The translations under genes were made by a program, and so were the position numbers. The notes beneath the pieces were generated by a model. It had not been told where the DNA came from. It was given only the letters and a program-made list of their open reading frames with translations, and ran no database searches. A stretch of DNA of 64,000 nucleotides, taken from Guillardia theta CCMP2712. Taxonomy: Eukaryota > Protista > Cryptophyta. Positions 52,513-63,101 of the stretch are shown here, one piece after another. Each line of letters starts with the position of its first letter. Position 1 is the stretch's first letter. The stretch spans positions 58,403 to 122,402 of the forward strand of contig NW_005434520.1 in the NCBI RefSeq assembly GCF_000315625.1, in the 5' to 3' direction.

Positions 52513-53657
52513 TCATTTAGCATTCACAAGATTGAAATCACGAATCATTTTCCTCAACTCTGGAGTGCGAAATTCACGCGTAGACAACCAAGAATCATCC
52601 GACGACTTGTCATATCCTTTCCAACGAACCAGGTACTGCACACGATTACCTTTCCCACGACGAGCCAAAATACGATCGACTTCAAAATACTGTCCATCGC
52701 GTTGAACCAAAGGCAACGGTGGTGGTTCAATTTCATCCAGAGAAACATCTCGAAAATAGTAAGGACGAAGTTTCGCCACGTTGAAAACTGTTTTCTTCAT
52801 GTGTTGAAAACGCGGTGTGAACTCCAAGCGCACAGAGTTATCCGAAACTTTCTCTTGTATCTTGAAAGGTCCAATGAAATCGGAATTTTCATCTTGCCCA
52901 TGGACTCATGCAACTTCAAATCGCGCGTCGACAACATAACGAAGTCGCCAACATTGAATTGCAGATCCTTCCGAGATCGCTTCATAGTCTTCTCCTTCTG
53001 AATCGCTGACAACGTTAACGCATCGCGAGCCAAGTCGACGGCTGCCATGATCTTGTCACGTACTTCCTCCACGTCCTCAGCACGATCGTCAGGAGTCAAG
53101 TCCAAAACTGTACGAACGTCTCTGCCATAGATGATCTCAAACGGCGTAAGATTCGTCGCATCTCTAACGGTCGTATTCCAAATTGTCTCCAGATGTACGA
53201 GATAATCATCCCAAGACTTGCTATCGTGCCGCATGCAGTAGATCCGCAAGGCTTCAACTATGACACTGTTGAACTTCTCAACTCGTCCCTGCGACTGCGG
53301 ATGATAAACGCTGCTATGGCGTATGTCGATTCCCATTAGAGTGAACAACTCAGTCCAAAATTCTGAAGAAAATAAACTCCCGTTGTCCGAGACCAACGTT
53401 TTGCAAATCCCTTGAGCACGATAAACCGTCTCGAAATACGCACGAGCTGCTCCTTTCGATGTGATCGTCTTCTTACACGGATACAAGAACACCCTGTTGG
53501 AAAACTGATCGAGGAACACCAAGACACTGTCGTTTCCCCGCTTCGAGGTGGGCAGCGCTGTGAGCAAATCCACTGAAACCTTCTCGAAACGCTCACGCGG
53601 AACCAAATGACTGTGCGGTTCGCCAGCCGCTCGTTGCTTGTAACTCTTGCCTTGCAA
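52513..53657 (-). CDS. Integrase core and C-terminal chromodomain (frameshifted pieces 52797-53657 and 52513-52833)
   Basis: VSVDLL...LVSDNG...YHPQSQGRVEKFN (DDE); YFEVDRILARRGKGNRVQYLVRWKGYDKSSDDSWL (chromodomain). Confidence 0.9.
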
Positions 53658-56290
53658 ACACTCCGCACACGAGTTGACATAGTTCGCGACCGTACGTCCT
53701 TACTCATGGTCGGCCAGAAGGCAATTTGCGACGCCTTCAAGAAAGTCTTCGTCTTCCCTACATGGCAAGAATCGTCATGAATCAGGCGCAAGAACTTCGC
53801 TCGAGAATGATAAGGAATACACACACGTTCCCGACCAAGCGAGTCCTTCCAAAACAAGACTCCGTCTCGCAGAAAATAAGTTCGACGCTGCATTGGGACT
53901 AGGTTTCCCTGTTGAATGTCCTGGAGAACCTGCGCGAAATATCTGTCCTGCTGATAATTTTTGACGACATCAGCTGTAAATGCGTTGTCTGTTGCTAGAG
54001 CGTAGCAGTGCGTAACAACCTCTGCATCACTGTCAGTCACCTCCATCACCTCCCCCTCCCCAGAGGACGAGATGGTACAAAGCAAGGTAGGATCCAAGTT
54101 GACCAAATCAGCACGCTGTCGAATCTCATCGTCTAACGCACTCTGTGACGGCACAACCGTAGAATCGTTCGGACGAGATAGGTAGTCAGCGATGACATTC
54201 TCTTCTCCAGGGATGTAGGAGATTTCATCCAAATCGAAATCAGCAAGAATTTGACTCCATCGAAACAATCGACCCGTGAGGTTGCTCTGCGTGAGAAGAT
54301 ACTTGAGACTCTTGTGATCTGTACGAACCAACACCCTGCGTCCGTACAAGTAAAACTTGAAATGAACCAATGCTGAAATCAATCCCAGAAGCTCTTTCTC
54401 GCGCACAGAATAATTTACCTCGGCACTGTTGAGACGCTTGCTGAAGAAGGCGACAGGCAACAGATCTTCGCCATGCTGTTGTGTCAAGACAGCACCAATG
54501 GCGTAGTCGCTCGCATCGACCAACACGCAAGTAGCTAACGCTGGGTTGAAGTACCTTAAAACAGGGGCTGATATCAAACGCTTCTTCAGCTCCTGAAAGG
54601 CCGCTTCTTGCGCGTCATCCCAACAAAACTTCACATTCTTGCGTAGGAGATTCGTTAGCGGAAGTGCTAACGCTGCGTAATCCGGCACATACTTCCTGTA
54701 AAAGTTCAACACTCCCAAAAACGACTTGAGTTCCTTCACTGTTTGAGGTGCCGTACGATCCACAATCGCTTGTACCTTTTTCTCTTGTGTCGAGACGCCT
54801 GCCTCGCTGATGTGGAAACCGAGGAAATCAATTTCAGAGTGAAACAGCTTACATTTCGACTTCTTGACAAACAACTGCTCTTTACGAAATCGATCCAGAG
54901 CCTGTCGAAGCAAACGCTCATGTCTCTCCAAGCTCCCATAACTGATCAAGCAAACATCGTCGATATAGCTCAGGCAATTCTCGAGACCTTGAAGAACACT
55001 CTCGAGAAATTTCTGAAATTGATTTGCCGAATCTACCAAGCCGAAAGGAATCCTCCGATACTGATATTTCCCAAACTTCGTGATGAAACAGGTGTACTTC
55101 CTCGACGCGGCGTCCAACTCAAGTTGCCAAAAACTTTTCGCCAGGTCGAGTGAGCTGATCCACAACCGTGCCCCAGGTTCTGAAGCATAACGCGCTCTCT
55201 CTTCCATGATCTTTCGACCCACTCGTTCTATCAGCTCCATCACCAACGGCAATGGAAAGTTATCATTCCGGATCAAGCTGTTAACGAACCTCATATCAGT
55301 GCAAAAACGCAATGTACCATCAGACTTTTTTGTGAAGATTACGGGAGACGTAAACTCAGACGTCGAAGGTTCAATGATCCCACGCTCCAACAAGAAGGCA
55401 AGATTCGCTTTCAACTCCTCCTCCAACGCGAGTGGCACAGGGTAAGGTTTCTTTTGCACCGCCTCAACGTTATCCTTGAGTCGAATCGTCGCCTTGAAGG
55501 ACCGGTCAAGAACAACGTCACTGGGAATGTCGTCACGAATGACATCCGAATAATCTTCCATGATCGTCTCGGCAGCCTTCTGCTCGAGACTCGTGGCACC
55601 ATCTGTCGGCTGAGCCATCTCCAACAGGTTGCACAAATGTACCACGTACCATTCCGAATCGTTCTGCTTGAGGTCTCTCACTGCCTCAGTGTAAGAAAGT
55701 ACCTGACACAGCGAGACGTCCGCAGCCCCGAATTGCTTGTTCGTCGGGCAAATAAGTAACGGAAGCTCGACCATCTTGCTGCGCCACTTGGCAAAGACTC
55801 TGGGATGACCCGCATCAATCACGATCTTGTTCGTACGCATCCATTCCCATGAGAGGATCATGTCCGCATGCGGCAAGTCAAGCATGTAGAACGACCCACT
55901 ACTCTTGAAACTGGAGCCTACGCCCAATTTTGTCTGGAAAACCATATCAGACAATCTACTCGTCCCGTCGGCCATAATAACTCGTTTACGAACTTCTGCA
56001 TCCGTGACCGACAGACCAAATTTGCGCACTGCCTTCGTGCTGATAAACGACTCTTCAGCAGCTGTATCGAGCAATGCATTAAGAACTATGGATTGATTCC
56101 CGAACCGAAAGGTCACAGGTACCATAGGTAGAGCTTTGATCCTGTGAGAGTCAACGGTGATACGACATTGACGAACATCCCTAGGATCTTCTGGCGGAGG
56201 TGTGCCCGGGTCGAAGACAACATTCGAAGTCTGCAAACCCGTGCCCCCGTCGATTGCGCCCTCCGCGGCAACCGACGTCACTGGTTTAAA
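53336..56290 (-). CDS. pol: Pol: aspartic protease, RT, RNase H and integrase zinc-finger start
   Basis: ALLDTAAE; LRFCTDMR, LDLAKSFWQ, IPFGL, YIDD; VDASDYAIGAVL, FSKRLNSAEVNYSVREKELL, RTDHKSL, NVIADYLSR; IHDDSCHVG; frame lost near 53690. Confidence 0.93.
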   Translation of the reverse strand, partial: FKPVTSVAAEGAIDGGTGLQTSNVVFDPGTPPPEDPRDVRQCRITVDSHRIKALPMVPVTFRFGNQSIVLNALLDTAAEESFISTKAVRKFGLSVTDAEVRKRVIMADGTSRLSDMVFQTKLGVGSSFKSSGSFYMLDLPHADMILSWEWMRTNKIVIDAGHPRVFAKWRSKMVELPLLICPTNKQFGAADVSLCQVLSYTEAVRDLKQNDSEWYVVHLCNLLEMAQPTDGATSLEQKAAETIMEDYSDVIRDDIPSDVVLDRSFKATIRLKDNVEAVQKKPYPVPLALEEELKANLAFLLERGIIEPSTSEFTSPVIFTKKSDGTLRFCTDMRFVNSLIRNDNFPLPLVMELIERVGRKIMEERARYASEPGARLWISSLDLAKSFWQLELDAASRKYTCFITKFGKYQYRRIPFGLVDSANQFQKFLESVLQGLENCLSYIDDVCLISYGSLERHERLLRQALDRFRKEQLFVKKSKCKLFHSEIDFLGFHISEAGVSTQEKKVQAIVDRTAPQTVKELKSFLGVLNFYRKYVPDYAALALPLTNLLRKNVKFCWDDAQEAAFQELKKRLISAPVLRYFNPALATCVLVDASDYAIGAVLTQQHGEDLLPVAFFSKRLNSAEVNYSVREKELLGLISALVHFKFYLYGRRVLVRTDHKSLKYLLTQSNLTGRLFRWSQILADFDLDEISYIPGEENVIADYLSRPNDSTVVPSQSALDDEIRQRADLVNLDPTLLCTISSSGEGEVMEVTDSDAEVVTHCYALATDNAFTADVVKNYQQDRYFAQVLQDIQQGNLVPMQRRTYFLRDGVLFWKDSLGRERVCIPYHSRAKFLRLIHDDSCHVGKTKTFLKASQIAFWPTMSKDVRSRTMSTRVRSVCKARVTSNERLANRTVIWFRVSVSRRFQWICSQRCPPRSGETTVSWCSSISFPTGCSCIRVRRRSHRKEQLVRISRRFIVLKGFAKRWSRTTGVYFLQNFGLSCSL
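56248..56290 (-). promoter_or_regulatory. Predicted -1 programmed ribosomal frameshift signal at the gag/pol junction
   Basis: Minus strand gcT TTA AAC (in gag phase), 6-nt spacer, 10-bp stem CGTCGGTTGC/GCAATCGACG; pol lies in the -1 frame. Confidence 0.8.
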
Positions 56291-57632
56291 GCTGACGGTT
56301 GTTCAGACCTCGACAAGAGAGGGCACTTGTCTCTAAAGTGACCGAACTTCTGACAGTTGTAGCACTTCACCTTCTTCTTGTCGAACTTCTTCTCCTTGCC
56401 CTGCATGTCCTCGCTCTGAGTGGGAGCCGACCGCTTGCCCTCATGACGAGGTTGTGCTTGGGTGAAATGAAGACTCGTCTGACCGTCTTGTGGGTGTCTC
56501 TGACGCAGATTAAGAGCTTCGCGATACAACTGCGGCAAATACTTGCCCATCTCCGACGGCTCCGCATGATAAGTAATCCCAAACGTCTTACCATCGCGTT
56601 CCATCAGCATGCTCAATTCCTTCCGTAGCATGGCACGCGCATAGTCCATTTGAATCCCATCGACAAAGGCGCGTTCCCAGCTACCTAGCGCAACACTAGG
56701 TCTCTTGGACACAAGGTAGCACGCCTGCAGGTGTGTAACCATCGCCTGGAATCTTGCGGTGTACACCTCGACGGACTCCTTGGGCCCTTGCCTAGCCTGC
56801 TTCTGCACATGACGCTCAAGTTTCTCAATAAACTCGAACGGTAACCATTTCAACAACAGTTTCTCCACAAACTGTTCCCAATCACCATGCTCAGCTGAGA
56901 ACTGATCTTGCTCAGCCATCGGGAGTGTAGCCCACCATAGCTGCACCTCCGGCCCGAACGCAGAGATGGCCGCTCCTACCCATCGATGGCGTGCTATACG
57001 GTGAAATTTACACCTGCCTTCGATATATCCGAGCCATGAGACCACCGACCTCTCCATGGTCTGCTCACCATTGTACTGCAACAATGCCAGACTTCGGATC
57101 CAGCTTGCAAATCTGACCACCGTCATTCTCCGCATGCTTAAGCTTGTGAGGCTTGTCCTCGGATTCCCGAACCCGCTCACAAAGCAGTACACGCATCTCC
57201 GCTGCCTCCTTGGCAAGCCTACGGTTCTCTCGCTGGGATTCCTCAAGTGCCCTCACAAGATCCTGGAGTTTGCGATCAGCTTCTCTCTGGGATTCTGCGA
57301 GTGCATTTACGAGATTGTGCATCTTATCCATGTTGTTCTGTTCCACAGACCTGAGCTCTCTACATGTCCGGCGTAGGTGCTCATTTTCTTCCACGATGTC
57401 ACGAAAACTGGCTTTCAAGGGAAGGGCGGGACCATCTCTTTCGTTTTCATCCCTACTCTCCAACCATGAAGGCACTGTACGACCACTGTCAACACTATCG
57501 TCACGTACAACAGCCTCCTGCTGGATGACAGTTTCCGACGGATCGTACGCATGTGACTGCGGCGACATGCCTGTCACCGTAGGAAAGCGCGGCTCTGCTG
57601 ACCCATTCAATGTCTCCTTCACAAAGCTGCCC
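56278..57632 (-). CDS. gag: Gag (one frameshift near 57090; the first ~22 codons lie beyond the nested transposon at 62970-63034)
   Basis: LWW, QGPKESVEVYTARF and the knuckle CYNCQKFGHFRDKC; removing the nested element restores ...SMSR-L-GSFVKE in frame. Confidence 0.88.
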
Positions 57633-57864
57633 AACCATTCTGGGGTCAAACCGTGGTAGTCGAACTTAACGCAAAAGAGGAATGGGTAATTCGAGTTATA
57701 GGAGACCGGTGGATGGGTACCCCTTGTTTTGATGGTGGTAGTTTTTACTAATATCAGAGGTAGGGGTAATGGCGGATTTCATTGTGACCGGCCCAAATTC
57801 TGTTTAAAACTACAATTTTTATCAGTCTTGTTTTTCCATCGTGTTTTGTACCAATCTTGTAGGA

Positions 57865-58790
57865 GGTTTGAATTTTTGTACCAGGAGCACTAGATAGACC
57901 GGGTCCATGCACAGTTGTTTTCTGGAACCAGGCTCCTGGGTCCAGATCGTACCCTACCTGGTCAGGCTTTTCTGGTTTGAATTTTTGTACCAGTGGGTCT
58001 ACATACACCGGGTCATTTGCGCCAATATATTCGATTGAGGGTAGGGTACTGAAAGGTACCTTGTACCCCTCCTGATAGGTCAGAGGGGGTAGTGGATGGT
58101 TTGAATTTTTGTACCAGGAGCACTAGATAGACCGGGTCCTTCTAGAGTATTATGACCCCACGGGTGCTAGGCTCAATCCGAGGTACCCTACCCCTATGCA
58201 CGCTCAGATCGTACCCTACCTGGTCAGGCTTTTCTGGTTTGAATTTTTGTACCAGTGGGTCTACATACACCGGGTCATTTGGGCCAATATATTCGATTGA
58301 GGGTAGGGTACTGAAAGGTACCTTGTACCCCTCCTGATGGGTCAGAGGGGGTAGTGGATGGTTTGAATTTTTGTACCAGGAGCACTAGATAGACCGGGTC
58401 CTTCTAGAGTATTATGACCCCACGGGTGCTAGGCTCAATCCGAGGTACCCTACCCCTATGCACGCTCAGATCGTACCCTACCTGGTCAGGCTTTTCTGGT
58501 TTGAATTTTTGTACCAGTGGGTCTACATACACCGGGTCATTTGCGCCAATATATTCGATTGAGGGTAGGGTACTGAAAGGTACCTTGTACCCCTCCTGAT
58601 AGGTCAGAGGGGGTAGTGGATGGTTTGAATTTTTGTACCAGGAGCACTAGATAGACCGGGTCCTTCTAGAGTATTATGACCCCACGGGTGCTAGGCTCAA
58701 TCCGAGGTACCCTACCCCTATGCACGCTCAGATCGTACCCTACCTGGTCAGGCTTTTCTGGTTTGAATTTTTGTACCAGTGGGTCTACAT
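57865..58790 (+). repeat. Subterminal 262-bp tandem repeat (~3.6 units) inside the RAG1-like transposon
   Basis: ggtttgaatttttgtaccaggagcactagatagaccgggtcc at ~57865, 58098, 58360 and 58622. Confidence 0.95.
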
Positions 58791-58978
58791 GCACCAGGTA
58801 CTTCGTCCACAAATTGAAGGGTAGGGTACATTCAACAATACCCACCCATGGAAGGTCCTGGCTGGTACCCCTTCAAATCCCCCCCGTTCCAATCTATAAA
58901 AGCTGGGATGAAAGTTGTGTTTCTCGCCGGGGTGCCACATTCACGCCTTGTTCCACACTCTCACGAAATCTTGAAGCA

Positions 58979-61438
58979 ATGTTTCAATTGGACTGTGGTC
59001 TTTTCAAGAGAAATTCTACATCTTTGCATCAAGGACCACCAACGAAGAAGAGAAGAACAAAACAGAAAATTGAAATCAGTGATCCATCTTTGCAAATCTT
59101 GGAAGAATTTGCCAAAGAGGCAGACTTTGTCTACTCCAAGCGCAGTAAATGGCAAGGTGATGGCGATCTGCATTCGTTCTTGAATGGTTTTGGTTCAAGT
59201 GCCTCTGCCAAGTTTCCTGCACACATTCCTGCGCGTACATTCAGTGAACTGTGGGAAGAATTCAAGACAGAGCATGAATTTCCACCGGAATTCCAACCAT
59301 CCTCTTTCACAGATTTTGAAGAAGAGAATATCCAGCAACTGTTCTTGGAGAAGGCTAAAGGGCAAACAATACCTTTCCTGGACATGGCTCTGCGGAATTG
59401 GTTGAAAGGGATCGGGAAACCCGGACGCTCACACGAGGAACAATGGAAGAATTTTGCATACGTGTTCGATTCGCTTTCCAATAAGAAAAACAAGAACAAC
59501 AAATTTACTTTGGAGAAATTTTTGTCGGGGTTTGTTTCTAACAGGAATTGTAAGCGTCAGCTTGCAAAAGAGCTTCGCAAAAACCTAAAACTTCAAAAGA
59601 AGCTAAAGTACATTGCCCGAAGCTATATGCCGGATGTCAACGAGTCATGCGCGTTACTGCTGAAGGCGAATATGACCAAGGGCGCGTACAATATATTCTG
59701 GGGTGATGATGGCCGAATGCATCGTCTCGCGGTTCCATTCAAGAAAATAGGAAAATGCCGTGTGATGAAGAAGCTTTTCTTGAAGCAAGCTTTGAAAGTT
59801 TTTCGAACCGAACAAGGATGTCACGGAACAGACCTTTCCGATTCTGTGAAATTGAAGATAGTGCAGAAGCATTTGCAACACAAAAAGAAGTTGCTGTTGA
59901 TTTTCAACACAGACGCAACGGTTTTGGGGAAGTCACTTGGATCGGACACAAAACACACTGAAGTATCTATCACAGTCCTCGCACCTCGATCCGAATGCGA
60001 TGACAGCGAAGAATGGAATGAAATCGAAGCTTGTGTCAGGCGGGCCCTCGATGCTGGGACCTTGATGATATTACCTGTGGGTGACAACGCCAAGAATATG
60101 GACTTCAATTTTTGGAAACCGTACGAGAACCCTATCATTTCGATTCTGAAGAATGGCATCACGATCGGAGACAACAATATCGAGATTCAAGTATTTTTCA
60201 GAGCAGACTTAGCAGGACACTATGGATTGCTCGATCATGGTGGAGTTCACGATCGCAGCGGGAAGTTTTGTCTTCACTGTGAAGAGACAGCGCAAGCCAA
60301 GAAGGCAGGCAAATTCATTTTCCTTTCCGAGATCCAGCAGCAGGATTCTATCTCTTTGCGCGAATTCTGCAAACGTCATCGCCTTTTCCCCTCCGACATT
60401 GAAATGTTGCATGACATTGTACGCAGTGCTTGCGGTAATGGAGATCTTGCTCTGGCAGAAATGATTGAAGGCAGTGATTCGGGAGGGGGCGCACATGTTG
60501 AACAGCTTTTGAGCAAATGTCTGGAAGCGGGCAATCAGCAGGAGTTGAGTACATGCTTAGACAATCCAGACAAGCCTCTTCCTATTGGACTTGTTGTACC
60601 TTGTCTTCGTTTATGTAAGATTTCAAGAAAGTCTAGTCATCTTCAACAAGCTGACTTCCCGAGTTTGCATTTCCTCTACTGCGCACTTCATTTGAGGTTA
60701 AGATTTGTCAACTTGTTGGTGAACTATATTTATGAAGTCGCTGCCAATCAAGGCAAAGTGGCAGCGGTTAACAGAATCTTGCAGTCGTTTCAAGTCAACA
60801 TGGAACTGAAAAATGACAAAGATCAACAAAGACAGTTGAGCGGAAAGATGTGTAAACGGTTTATGAACGCTTTACCGCAAATCATAGATTTGCTGATTTC
60901 GAATGAGGTCACTCGTCAAGAGTGGAGAACTGCCCTTGATGAATGGGATCATGTCATCACGGTGCTCTCGTGTCAGTACTACGACAAAATTACTCGGGCA
61001 GATGCAGAAGAGTTGCCGTCTAGAATCCGGAGCTTTTGTGTAAAAATTGTCAAATTGATCGGAGATGTGAAGAGGCTGCAGTCGTTTTATTTTCATAGCC
61101 TCCTAATTGGGCACATCGGCGAACAATTCGAGTATCTATACAAGGAGTTTGGAGTCCCCCTGGGACTTTTGAGCCTTTCTGCAATCGAAAAGCGACACGA
61201 AACAATGGGAAGACGATGCTACAAGAAAGCTATAGCAGAGATCAATTTGTACATGAGTGGAAAGAGTACTTCCGATTTGCATCCCGATGGACAACCCGAT
61301 TCTAAGGCCTCACGATCGTTTTACACTCTAATGAATCTGCTCTTACAATCATACAACGATGAGACTGCTGAAGCTCTATTTCAGCACACAGTTCAGAACG
61401 TTGATTTAGCAGCGTTAAGAAGAAGTTTGGATGAATAA
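58979..61438 (+). CDS. RAG1-core/Transib-like DDE transposase (~819 aa from the ATG at 58979; ORF open from 58676)
   Basis: Ordered motifs LIFNTDAT (D), VFFRADLA (D), FCLHC (CxxC), CALHLRLR, LSGKMCKRFM, FYFHSLLIGH and GVPLGLLSLSAIEKRH (E); NLS-like PPTKKRRTK; TATAAAA at ~58895 upstream; intronless with no stops. Confidence 0.75.
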   Translation: MFQLDCGLFKRNSTSLHQGPPTKKRRTKQKIEISDPSLQILEEFAKEADFVYSKRSKWQGDGDLHSFLNGFGSSASAKFPAHIPARTFSELWEEFKTEHEFPPEFQPSSFTDFEEENIQQLFLEKAKGQTIPFLDMALRNWLKGIGKPGRSHEEQWKNFAYVFDSLSNKKNKNNKFTLEKFLSGFVSNRNCKRQLAKELRKNLKLQKKLKYIARSYMPDVNESCALLLKANMTKGAYNIFWGDDGRMHRLAVPFKKIGKCRVMKKLFLKQALKVFRTEQGCHGTDLSDSVKLKIVQKHLQHKKKLLLIFNTDATVLGKSLGSDTKHTEVSITVLAPRSECDDSEEWNEIEACVRRALDAGTLMILPVGDNAKNMDFNFWKPYENPIISILKNGITIGDNNIEIQVFFRADLAGHYGLLDHGGVHDRSGKFCLHCEETAQAKKAGKFIFLSEIQQQDSISLREFCKRHRLFPSDIEMLHDIVRSACGNGDLALAEMIEGSDSGGGAHVEQLLSKCLEAGNQQELSTCLDNPDKPLPIGLVVPCLRLCKISRKSSHLQQADFPSLHFLYCALHLRLRFVNLLVNYIYEVAANQGKVAAVNRILQSFQVNMELKNDKDQQRQLSGKMCKRFMNALPQIIDLLISNEVTRQEWRTALDEWDHVITVLSCQYYDKITRADAEELPSRIRSFCVKIVKLIGDVKRLQSFYFHSLLIGHIGEQFEYLYKEFGVPLGLLSLSAIEKRHETMGRRCYKKAIAEINLYMSGKSTSDLHPDGQPDSKASRSFYTLMNLLLQSYNDETAEALFQHTVQNVDLAALRRSLDE

Positions 61439-61541
61439 ATTTTTTACTTCTCTGTCTGAATACTTTTACCATCACAACAGTTCACAACGCAGAGTTAAGA
61501 AATTTGGAAGAATAAAACTTTGGCCTTGTCTGCCTTGTTGC

Positions 61542-62687
61542 TTAGTAGTGTTCCGAGGGAGGGAAATTCCACATTAGCGCCTTGGTGAAGGATAACCTTA
61601 CAATTTTTGTGAACTTGAAGGTGATCGCTGTTGCACATGCCGAACGCGGATTTTGAATTGGCATGAAAATTTGGATAGGGCCTTCGAGGTAGATGGATCC
61701 TCGAGCAGGCCCCAGGCTAAAAGGACAATCTTTCAAGGGAACATTCAAGGCTTCTTTGAACAATGGAGTATGTAACAGATTTGCATCCAGAGTCCAGGCA
61801 CATCGACGAGAATGGCGGTTTGAAATTCCTGAGCACAGCACCTTGCTTGTTTCTACAGGCATCTGTCTCAACAAATACAGTATCGCAGTAAAATCTTGAA
61901 TTGGTACGGTGAAAGCAAGGCGATTTGCTTTTCTCGGATTCCATTTAGTGCATCCTCGCTTCACCAACCATATCTTCAATTCTTCTCGTATGACATTAAA
62001 AACATTGGAGATCTTGAAGAAGTTAAGCTCATCCTGAAAGTTCGCCAAATAACAATTGAGCATTGATTGTGTCAACCGAAATCCTTTGAAGTATTCTATG
62101 TGACAACGTTCTTTTTGCTGTACATTCTCGAAAAAGATCCATCCAACGACGCTTACAAGTGAGACAGGAGATGGAGGACCGGGGGCAACAAAAACACAAG
62201 GGAATGTAACATGGAAAATTCTCACGATATCTGATATTGGAAACTCATCTGTATATATGCTCTGGAAACACTCATGTGATTGAATTCCAGCTAGCAAACT
62301 TGTGTACCTCCTGTCATTCATGATAGACAACTTTTGGAAAACTTCCTCAATGATCGACCTATTATACAAAATGTAAACTTCTACTGACTGCTCTGTGACA
62401 TGTTTTATGACTCCGTGCCGCTCCTTACGATCGACGTCCAAGAACACAACGCCAAGAAAGGGTTTCAACGTAAGATCAACATTCCACATGGGCACATGGT
62501 ACTTTGGAGGGTTTGGCAACGGAGGAGAAGCTTGCATGTCAGTTTGGTAGGTAAAACAAAGAGGGACTTGGACATTGTTAGGAATGTTTCCGGGCTTTTC
62601 TTGCAGCTGGACCCGTTTGTCCCTCTGTTCGTAATGTCTCCTACTGTCATCTGCAAGTTGAGCTGCCTTCCTTCGAACTCTTGCCAT
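61542..62687 (-). CDS. Transposon accessory protein (381 aa), possible BAH-like domain
   Basis: Intact ORF inside the TIRs, tail-to-tail with the transposase (~100-bp gap); GVIKHVTEQSVEVYILY...HECFQSIYTDEFPISDIVRIFHV resembles the BAH pattern (weak). Confidence 0.6.
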   Translation of the reverse strand: MARVRRKAAQLADDSRRHYEQRDKRVQLQEKPGNIPNNVQVPLCFTYQTDMQASPPLPNPPKYHVPMWNVDLTLKPFLGVVFLDVDRKERHGVIKHVTEQSVEVYILYNRSIIEEVFQKLSIMNDRRYTSLLAGIQSHECFQSIYTDEFPISDIVRIFHVTFPCVFVAPGPPSPVSLVSVVGWIFFENVQQKERCHIEYFKGFRLTQSMLNCYLANFQDELNFFKISNVFNVIREELKIWLVKRGCTKWNPRKANRLAFTVPIQDFTAILYLLRQMPVETSKVLCSGISNRHSRRCAWTLDANLLHTPLFKEALNVPLKDCPFSLGPARGSIYLEGPIQIFMPIQNPRSACATAITFKFTKIVRLSFTKALMWNFPPSEHY

Positions 62688-63101
62688 TCCTTTTCAGGCT
62701 GGTTGGACAGGGAGGGCACCGCCAACATTTTAAGATTCAGAATTTTAAGAGTTATCAATTCTAAAGCTATAATTGCAATAGATTTGTACCAATTCCATGT
62801 TAAGCTTTGACAGTAAAATACATGTAAAAAAAGGTTTCAACCAAGTGTGAAAATCTTCAATAGAAAATTTCAAGAAACCTTCAAACAGAAATGACTACCC
62901 CCTGTTTCCCATGCCCCACCCCCCTTGAGAATTCCATTGAAACTACCGCGGTTTGACCCCAGAATGAACCGCGACATGCTTCGACTCATGAAGTCCGAGA
63001 CAACGCTACCTGACTGAATGCTCGTCCTATCCATGTTTTCTTGAACAACTTCTTTCAACACAACAACTCCGAGAGGAAAACCAGGCCTTCGCGTACCAAA
63101 A

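Follow-up and report, generated by a model that had tools for sequence, protein, structure and literature searches.

Which kind of mobile element interrupts a retrotransposon of the cryptophyte alga Guillardia theta, and how close does it stand to RAG1? RAG1 belongs to the enzymes that assemble antibody genes. RAG1/RAG2 evolved from a Transib-like transposon, and to our knowledge the two-gene relatives known so far (ProtoRAG and TransibSU) all come from deuterostomes. We analyzed a 64,000-nt stretch of G. theta CCMP2712 DNA (contig NW_005434520.1, positions 58,403-122,402, forward strand), here called the window, to which all coordinates refer unless another contig is named; genome searches covered the CCMP2712 assembly of 87.1 Mb in 669 contigs. 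An earlier reading of the letters of this DNA (the original prediction) had proposed a young two-gene transposon with a RAG1-like transposase. The element spans 57636-62966 (5.3 kb) and is inserted in the minus-strand gag frame of a long terminal repeat (LTR) retrotransposon. Probably, it is an autonomous DNA transposon that moves by cut-and-paste and belongs to a hitherto unnamed lineage of the CMCT clade (CACTA/EnSpm, Mirage, Chapaev, Transib/RAG1); the family occurs in G. theta as several subfamilies and has recently been active. Its features are as follows, with target-site duplication abbreviated as TSD and terminal inverted repeat as TIR.

57633-57635, no strand: left TSD copy, AAC; paralogous empty sites hold a single AAC.
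57636-57660, plus strand: left TIR, CATTCTGGGGTCAAACCGTGGTAGT, from repeat comparison and the ends of copies.
58979-61438, plus strand: transposase gene, 819 amino acids, no intron, with DDE core, C431xxC434, C568xxH571 and H706x5H712.
61542-62687, minus strand: partner gene, 381 amino acids, intronless, convergent with the transposase gene.
62942-62966, minus strand: right TIR, from repeat comparison and the ends of copies.
62967-62969, no strand: right TSD copy, AAC; paralogous empty sites hold a single AAC.

The two TIRs are 25 nt long and complementary at 24 of 25 positions (96%), and AAC is found on both sides, as had been predicted. The only TIR mismatch of the window copy lies at position 19 of the left repeat, where it carries T and the other copies C (a CpG-to-TpG change). 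We then searched the genome with a 72-nt query representing the empty site, made up of 36 nt from either flank and containing a single AAC. Seven other places, all paralogues of the LTR family, matched at 100% and without interruption over positions 1-72, and five more matched at 97-99%; the window locus itself matched only as two halves. When rejoined, the minus-strand flanks read ...SMSR-LGSFVKE in frame (open reading frame (ORF) 57065-57649), as anticipated from the restored gag frame. The paralogous empty sites with their single AAC thus establish both the boundaries of the element and the 3-bp duplication.

Searching the genome with the whole element revealed three kinds of relatives: on contig C285 a second autonomous copy with 94% identity, on C19 a copy that is more distant, and ~15 copies of a ~2.1-kb non-autonomous derivative, whose similarity to the autonomous element is confined to the terminal ~135 bp on the 5' side and ~70 bp on the 3' side. 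Perfect 3-bp TSDs flank 14 of the 17 TIR-bounded copies, where the chance of such a match is 1/64 per copy, and those of the other three are imperfect. The duplications found (AAC, TGA, AGC, TCC, TTA, GCC, GAC, TCA, TCA, GCT, GTT, TTC, CTA and GTG) share no target-site consensus. The family inserts with a 3-bp staggered cut and without a target consensus.

The ends of the element are conserved inverted repeats, 5'-CATTCTGGGGTC...GACCCCAGAATG-3'. The termini CATTCTGGGGTC are constant in all copies (CATTC...GAATG), including the C19 element, whose transposase shares only 58% amino acid identity with that of the window. As CAT ends and a 3-bp TSD also occur in this diverged element, they are a property of the lineage and not a mutation of a single copy. 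In these two traits the family lies on the Chapaev/CACTA side, as the original prediction had it. No TIRs were found within the available DNA of a metagenome contig that carries a related gene pair (L074, see below) or around the more diverged paralogues of the genome (L044-L060).

Among the non-autonomous copies, three agree at 100% over 2104 bp and two others over 2141 bp, in both cases at separate sites with different TSDs. Moreover, both ORFs of the window copy are intact, and its one TIR mismatch is the CpG-to-TpG change noted above. From the identical copies with different TSDs, the intact ORFs and the young LTR element that serves as host, the family has recently been mobile, and the expectation of recent activity is borne out. 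Comparing the window copy with the C285 copy yielded a ratio of nonsynonymous to synonymous substitution rates (dN/dS) of 0.31 for the transposase and 0.19 for the partner, and from these values both genes are under purifying selection. Domesticated genes are constrained in the same manner, and a domesticated or immobile gene pair, or an assembly artefact, that resembles a transposon would also fit the very low read count in the sole certain RNA run (four reads, from 6% of the run sampled). Against such an explanation stand the precise empty sites, the 14 of 17 perfect TSDs at unrelated sites, the dispersed copies of 100% identity and the retention of the TIRs between subfamilies. We give it a negligible chance.

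Several copies deserve a description of their own. The ~2.1-kb non-autonomous family (L021 and 13 similar loci) falls into three subfamilies with 88-100% identity and has no ORF above about 100 amino acids. One of its members, at C10:742482-745285 (L023), is 100% identical to two others and yet has unmatched flanks (CAC and GGC); a degenerate second 3' end lies 107 bp downstream. This copy may represent a rearrangement or an insertion beside an older remnant. In the autonomous copy on C285 (C285:586-26312) the CTA duplications match, and 25.7 kb separate the two ends. The 5' repeat array is divided there from the transposase gene by about 20 kb of other DNA with ORFs of 341-541 amino acids and a 102-N gap; a Pfam scan of these ORFs gave no informative match. 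A nested insertion or the capture of DNA could account for this stretch. With 92-100% identity, fragments of the partner gene and of the 3' part of the element are found at C8:1159648-1159999, C8:1168340-1168813 and C144:115774-116176. The two C8 fragments are ~8 kb apart, and the C8 and C144 pieces are broken or interrupted copies.

We next turned to the transposase. Its 819-residue ORF contains D312, D410, C431, C434, H571, H706, H712 and E737 at the positions and in the sequence contexts given in the original prediction. In a 12-sequence family alignment that reaches down to 23% identity, D312, D410, C431, C434, C568, H571, H706 and H712 are invariant, and E737 is kept in at least 90% of the sequences. 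The C431-x2-C434 motif begins 21 residues after D410 and corresponds to the C(2)C feature of the CMCT clade. The histidine pair ahead of the glutamate is spaced as H706-x5-H712 in the Guillardia family and as H-x3/4-H in distant metagenomic relatives. Residues 1-160 contain a basic KKRR stretch; inspection revealed no cysteine/histidine-rich region in this part, and no Pfam zinc-finger model matched it.

Homologs of the protein are numerous and almost entirely nameless. The genome holds many diverged transposase paralogues (down to 23% identity), one of which is NCBI XP_005818475, and for both ORFs the only named homologs outside G. theta are EukProt proteins of the cryptophyte Hanusia phi, which presumably derive from transcriptome data. 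A profile search of 1.84 billion representatives returned 128 matches, nearly all of them unnamed metagenomic proteins and none with a transposase Pfam domain; they include a group of proteins of ~1,100-1,300 amino acids that align over the whole catalytic region. A word-index protein search started from the distant metagenomic group retrieved only unnamed proteins that lack Pfam domains, and no named Chapaev or Transib protein. No Pfam family matched either ORF, and phmmer found nothing for the 819-residue ORF among PDB sequences. A 46-sequence profile searched against PDB sequences likewise hit no RAG1 or Transib chain, yielding no more than a local match of LysM type. In genome-wide searches, the Pfam models PF06918, PF12940 and PF02992 did not match the transposase family. 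That neither Pfam, nor PDB sequences, nor named homologs account for the protein supports the idea of an undescribed lineage, in a comparison that was made without Repbase.

The LysM-like match corresponds to a beta-alpha-alpha segment directly after the CxxC motif (residues ~446-480; window about 60314-60418). Three metagenomic relatives match Pfam LysM (best E 4e-6), and the profile-to-PDB comparison reaches LysM repeats at E 0.09.

The sole recurrent Pfam signal was DUF1280, found in 5 of 46 relatives, all distant metagenomic proteins, with scores of 13-15 bits where the threshold is 25. DUF1280 comprises Chapaev transposases and clusters with RAG1 according to Majorek et al. (PMC3985635). 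This signal favors an alternative, in which the element is a divergent member of a described CMC superfamily (Chapaev or EnSpm/CACTA) and its RAG1 likeness is a matter of the clan-wide fold only. The 3-bp TSD, as in Chapaev and EnSpm, the CA..TG termini, and the subterminal repeats and two genes, as in EnSpm, argue in the same direction, and Transib sensu lato includes Chapaev according to Kapitonov and Koonin (PMC4411706). However, the window protein and its Guillardia paralogues match neither DUF1280, nor Transposase_21, nor any other model even at E<=1. The CAT termini depart from the invariable CAC..GTG of Chapaev, the N-terminus lacks a cysteine-rich Chapa/RING region, and the partner is unlike TnpA, with a BAH fold and no Pfam match. 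The structural data described next bear on this alternative as well.

We predicted the structure of transposase residues 160-800 with AlphaFold, template-free and with a 46-sequence alignment, and obtained a model with a predicted local distance difference test (pLDDT) of 88.4 and a predicted template-modelling score (pTM) of 0.86. All 49 Foldseek matches in the PDB at E<=1e-3 are RAG1, HzTransib or BbRAGL (E 3e-9 to 4e-5), and the next match is Hermes at E 0.02. VIA-align ranked HzTransib best (Z 20.2, 417 of 480 residues, 3.9 Å, 16% identity). RAG1 reached Z ~19-20, covering RAG1 459-1004 from the dimerisation and DNA-binding domain (DDBD) through the C-terminal domain, and BbRAGL reached Z 18.7. 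These alignments extend over about 420-430 residues; the runners-up are the P element (Z 11.2), ISCth4 (8.8) and Hermes (7.8). Membership in the Transib/RAG/CMC clan, for which a Foldseek comparison had been suggested as a check, is supported by these matches. Other superfamilies with a 3-bp TSD, i.e., PIF/Harbinger, Zator and Academ, were considered and rejected on the ground that the fold search puts the protein firmly with RAG1/Transib.

In the model, D312 lies on the first RNase H-like strand, D410 directly after the fourth and E737 where a long, late helix begins, which is the canonical arrangement. The 819-residue protein is predicted to possess the full RAG1/HzTransib architecture, from DDBD-equivalent helices to the C-terminal domain. 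The triad would be equivalent to RAG1 D600/D708/E962 and be accompanied by a C2H2 zinc site, a reading well supported by the model. The mouse RAG1 numbering used for this comparison (D600/D708/E962, C727/C730, H937/H942) agrees with the literature (PMC4914335).

Likeness to RAG1 was also apparent in protein-language-model features, where RAG1 clusters are nearest (0.95, 175-183 shared features), followed by DUF1280/Chapaev clusters (0.94). We further compared the prediction with ESM Atlas clusters, with the template-modelling (TM) score normalized by query:

Unnamed eukaryotic clusters (one with 16% DUF1280): TM 0.58-0.63.
Transib-like and RAG1 clusters: TM 0.58-0.59; a shorter 463-residue RAG1 fragment cluster, 0.51.
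Transposase_21 (CMC) clusters: TM 0.54-0.55.

DUF1280 clusters are among the nearest both by features and by shape, which together with the Transposase_21 values speaks for the CMC alternative. Since the predicted CMC models fit nearly as well as those of Transib/RAG1, the RAG1-like fold is one of the whole clan. The predicted likeness to RAG1 therefore stands as far as the fold is concerned, but does not set this lineage apart from CMC. As we know of no CMC transposase with a solved structure, the PDB result cannot separate Transib from CMC either. Weighing both sides, we judge a divergent member of Chapaev or EnSpm/CACTA to be unlikely, though still the most serious competitor of an unnamed CMCT lineage.

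The same structural data could be taken to mean that the element is a Transib-superfamily element in the strict sense and a direct protist relative of the RAG1 ancestor, with HzTransib as single best structural match and the RAG1 families as the nearest named families by features. Its TSD measures 3 bp and not 5 bp, however, and its termini are CAT and not CAC. Furthermore, the RAG1 Pfam models match neither the protein nor the genome, the profile finds no RAG1/Transib chain among PDB sequences, and the partner is not RAG2-like. We regard this assignment as very improbable.

What, then, is the partner? At its N-terminus lies a basic helix, followed by a BAH-like beta-barrel (residues ~52-201) and then by the C-terminal half. 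The predicted model (pLDDT 79.6) is of mixed alpha/beta type, and every top match is a BAH domain, with no propeller. Foldseek gave BAH matches at E ~1e-4, and the ESM Atlas agrees. An exhaustive VIA search with the partner returned 19 BAH chains at Z 6.4-10.3, followed by a drop to 4.8. For the C-terminal half no structural match was obtained, and a Pfam scan of the partner gave no match, including to the BAH model PF01426. According to the model, residues ~52-201 form a BAH-like domain. The original prediction had compared the gene pair with ProtoRAG and the RAG1-RAG2 locus; the convergent layout indeed agrees, whereas the kelch/RAG2 reading of the partner was rejected, as its fold is BAH and a propeller is nowhere among the top matches.

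The pairing of the two genes is conserved. A convergent partner adjoins every diverged transposase paralogue in the genome (down to 23% identity). Beyond G. theta, the metagenome contig L074 (ENA, 4797 bp, environmental eukaryote) carries a convergent transposase-partner pair of 868 and 383 amino acids, in which the transposase has 22% identity and the second ORF was recognized as a homolog by hhalign (99.7%, E 6e-27). In the 12-kb locus L073, home to a distant relative of ~1,100 residues, no partner was found in any of the six frames up to the end of the contig, which lies ~800 bp past the gene. In sum, the G. theta family exists as near-identical autonomous and non-autonomous copies, and its coding units always comprise two convergent, selectively constrained genes that are inherited together. 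By its predicted fold, the partner may act as a chromatin-contacting accessory subunit. A prediction of the complex between the transposase core (model 56-641) and the partner (55-381), run without alignments or controls, scored 0.00 in both runs and is no evidence either way. One may go further and regard the Guillardia family and its environmental relatives as a new superfamily-level branch of RAG1/Transib/Chapaev with an obligatory, co-inherited BAH chromatin-reading subunit. We put this forward as a tentative proposal that is rather doubtful at present.

By analogy to RAG1/Transib, transposition could proceed as follows. D312, D410 and E737 would bind the catalytic metals, while C431/C434 and H706/H712 would form a zinc site by which the large insertion domain is fastened to the core. 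Both TIRs would be brought together by a dimer of the transposase, which would nick at the border between transposon and flank, and the element would be released through hairpins on the flanking DNA. The 3'-OH ends of the transposon would then join target phosphates 3 bp apart, as opposed to 5 bp in Transib/RAG. The BAH-like domain of the partner might contact nucleosomes or histone tails, comparable to the chromatin reading of RAG2 and with an unrelated fold.

Outside of the coding genes, two features concern the noncoding region and the host element:

57865-58810, plus strand: 5' subterminal tandem array with a 262-bp unit repeated 3.3 times, upstream of the transposase gene only.
57065-57635, minus strand: downstream part of the gag frame that the insertion interrupts in the host LTR retrotransposon; the upstream part continues at 62970-63035.

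The array holds eight direct copies of the motif GTTTGAATTTTTGTACCAG, which is absent from the rest of the window. The C285 copy has this array too, and it may function in protein binding or as a promoter. The host retrotransposon (window 53336-57635 and 62970-63035, minus strand) encodes a gag protein that contains a CCHC knuckle, as well as pol, in an ORF of 981 amino acids. At least five of its paralogues are ~100% identical over the 400 bp tested, and it is itself a very young and probably active family.

Assembled contigs of the runs X1, X2 and X4, which are only guessed to be RNA, span 59125-62721 without gaps and differ from it in one base at most, and they indicate no intron in either gene. 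The contigs of X4 split into 59179-61452 and 61434-62721, roughly one per gene, and both genes are likely transcribed. Those two contigs overlap by 19 nt (61434-61452), in the interval from one stop codon to the other; provided that the contigs represent transcripts, the convergent mRNAs have overlapping 3' ends.

Some points weigh against an unnamed CMCT lineage with a RAG1-like enzyme and a chromatin-contacting partner. A link to RAG1/Transib is absent at the sequence level, both in the Pfam scan and in the 46-sequence profile against PDB sequences, so that the relation is drawn from predicted structure and embeddings. Likewise, the residue equivalence of D312/D410/E737 to RAG1 D600/D708/E962 and the geometry of the zinc site are putative. 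The position inside the clade would not be fixed by these models, as CMC (0.54-0.55) comes nearly equal to Transib/RAG1 (0.58-0.59), and the H(5)H spacing of the element differs from the H(3-4)H of the clade. The family may already be deposited in Repbase under some name. Binding of the partner to the transposase or to chromatin is hypothetical, and as for expression, the RNA status of X1, X2 and X4 is a guess and the certain RNA run holds only four reads.

Nevertheless, the element is of interest beyond its own genome. It is an intact, apparently still mobile and intronless two-gene element from a protist that combines the predicted RAG1/Transib architecture with a 3-bp stagger and different ends. 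It thereby offers a natural comparison for how this fold sets the target stagger and recognizes transposon ends, and for why such enzymes recruit a second subunit. The conserved BAH-like partner suggests chromatin-guided transposition, and the element is a candidate native transposon tool for G. theta. The predicted structure also provides annotation for a sizeable number of so far unannotated eukaryotic and metagenomic proteins, i.e., the 128 representative clusters and 56 further clusters related to the ~1,100-residue group. Should the branch with a BAH subunit prove true, the arrangement of a catalytic RAG1-like protein with a chromatin reader arose more than once or predates animals, and it would live on as an active transposon in an alga that can be cultured.

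How does the element compare with known systems? With HzTransib (PDB 6PQX/6PQN), RAG1 and BbRAGL (6B40) it is predicted to share the dimerisation/DNA-binding helices, the pre-RNase H region, the RNase H core, a split zinc-binding insertion and the C-terminal domain. The order D...D...CxxC...HxnH...E with similar spacing and the CA...TG termini are common to Transib/RAG1 and the element, and a second gene is also present in ProtoRAG and the RAG locus. Unlike Transib/RAG1, the element has a 3-bp TSD (5 bp in Transib), CAT ends (CAC in Transib), TIRs that are not heptamer/nonamer-like, an H(5)H pair and a longer insertion domain with the LysM-like segment. Sequence similarity is not detectable: the RAG1 Pfam family does not match the protein at E<=1, and PF12940 finds nothing in the genome. 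In contrast to RAG/ProtoRAG, the partner adopts a BAH fold and not a kelch propeller plus PHD, and the host is a cryptophyte alga. The BAH likeness itself extends to the domains of ORC1, Sir3, DNMT1, AIPP3 and BAHCC1 (residues ~52-201, Z up to 10.3), from which the partner differs by its missing PF01426 match and by a C-terminal half without known fold.

Chapaev elements have a 3-4-bp TSD and invariable CAC..GTG termini, and Chapaev3 targets TWA (PMC4079192). The element resembles Chapaev/Chapaev3 in TSD length, in clan, in the weak DUF1280 signals of its distant relatives and in the proximity of DUF1280 clusters. It differs by CAT..ATG ends, by the absent target consensus as compared with TWA in Chapaev3, by the lack of an N-terminal Chapa zinc finger/RING, by PF06918 being unmatched in protein and genome, and by two genes in place of one. 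EnSpm/CACTA (TnpD and TnpA) shares the 3-bp TSD, subterminal repeats, two proteins, C(2)C and HxnH motifs and a similar predicted fold (TM ~0.55). Here, the element deviates by the absence of CACTA ends and of Transposase_21, DUF4218 or Transposase_24 matches, by convergent and intronless genes, and by a partner that is BAH-like and not of TnpA type.

The CMCT clade as a whole is characterized by C(2)C, H(3-4)H, CA..TG termini and a 2-5-bp TSD (Kojima 2025; PMC12730594). It includes Plavaka, ESTA and Lanisha; ESTA was connected with RAG1 through profile methods (HHpred) only, and a likeness to RAG1 has already been reported for CMCT lineages other than this one (PMC12730594). The element agrees with this clade in a DDE triad within a predicted RNase H-like fold, C(2)C, CA..TG ends and a TSD within 2-5 bp; a histidine pair also stands at the same place before the glutamate, with a spacing that differs by one. 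The named lineages are fungal, plant or animal, whereas the new family comes from a cryptophyte and unnamed environmental eukaryotes and has a BAH-like partner. As far as compared, by Pfam models and published descriptions with Repbase families not included, the element appears to fall outside the named CMCT lineages. Because it shows the features of the clade apart from the histidine spacing, yet lacks the defining features of each named member, we propose that it represents a new lineage of the known CMCT clade.

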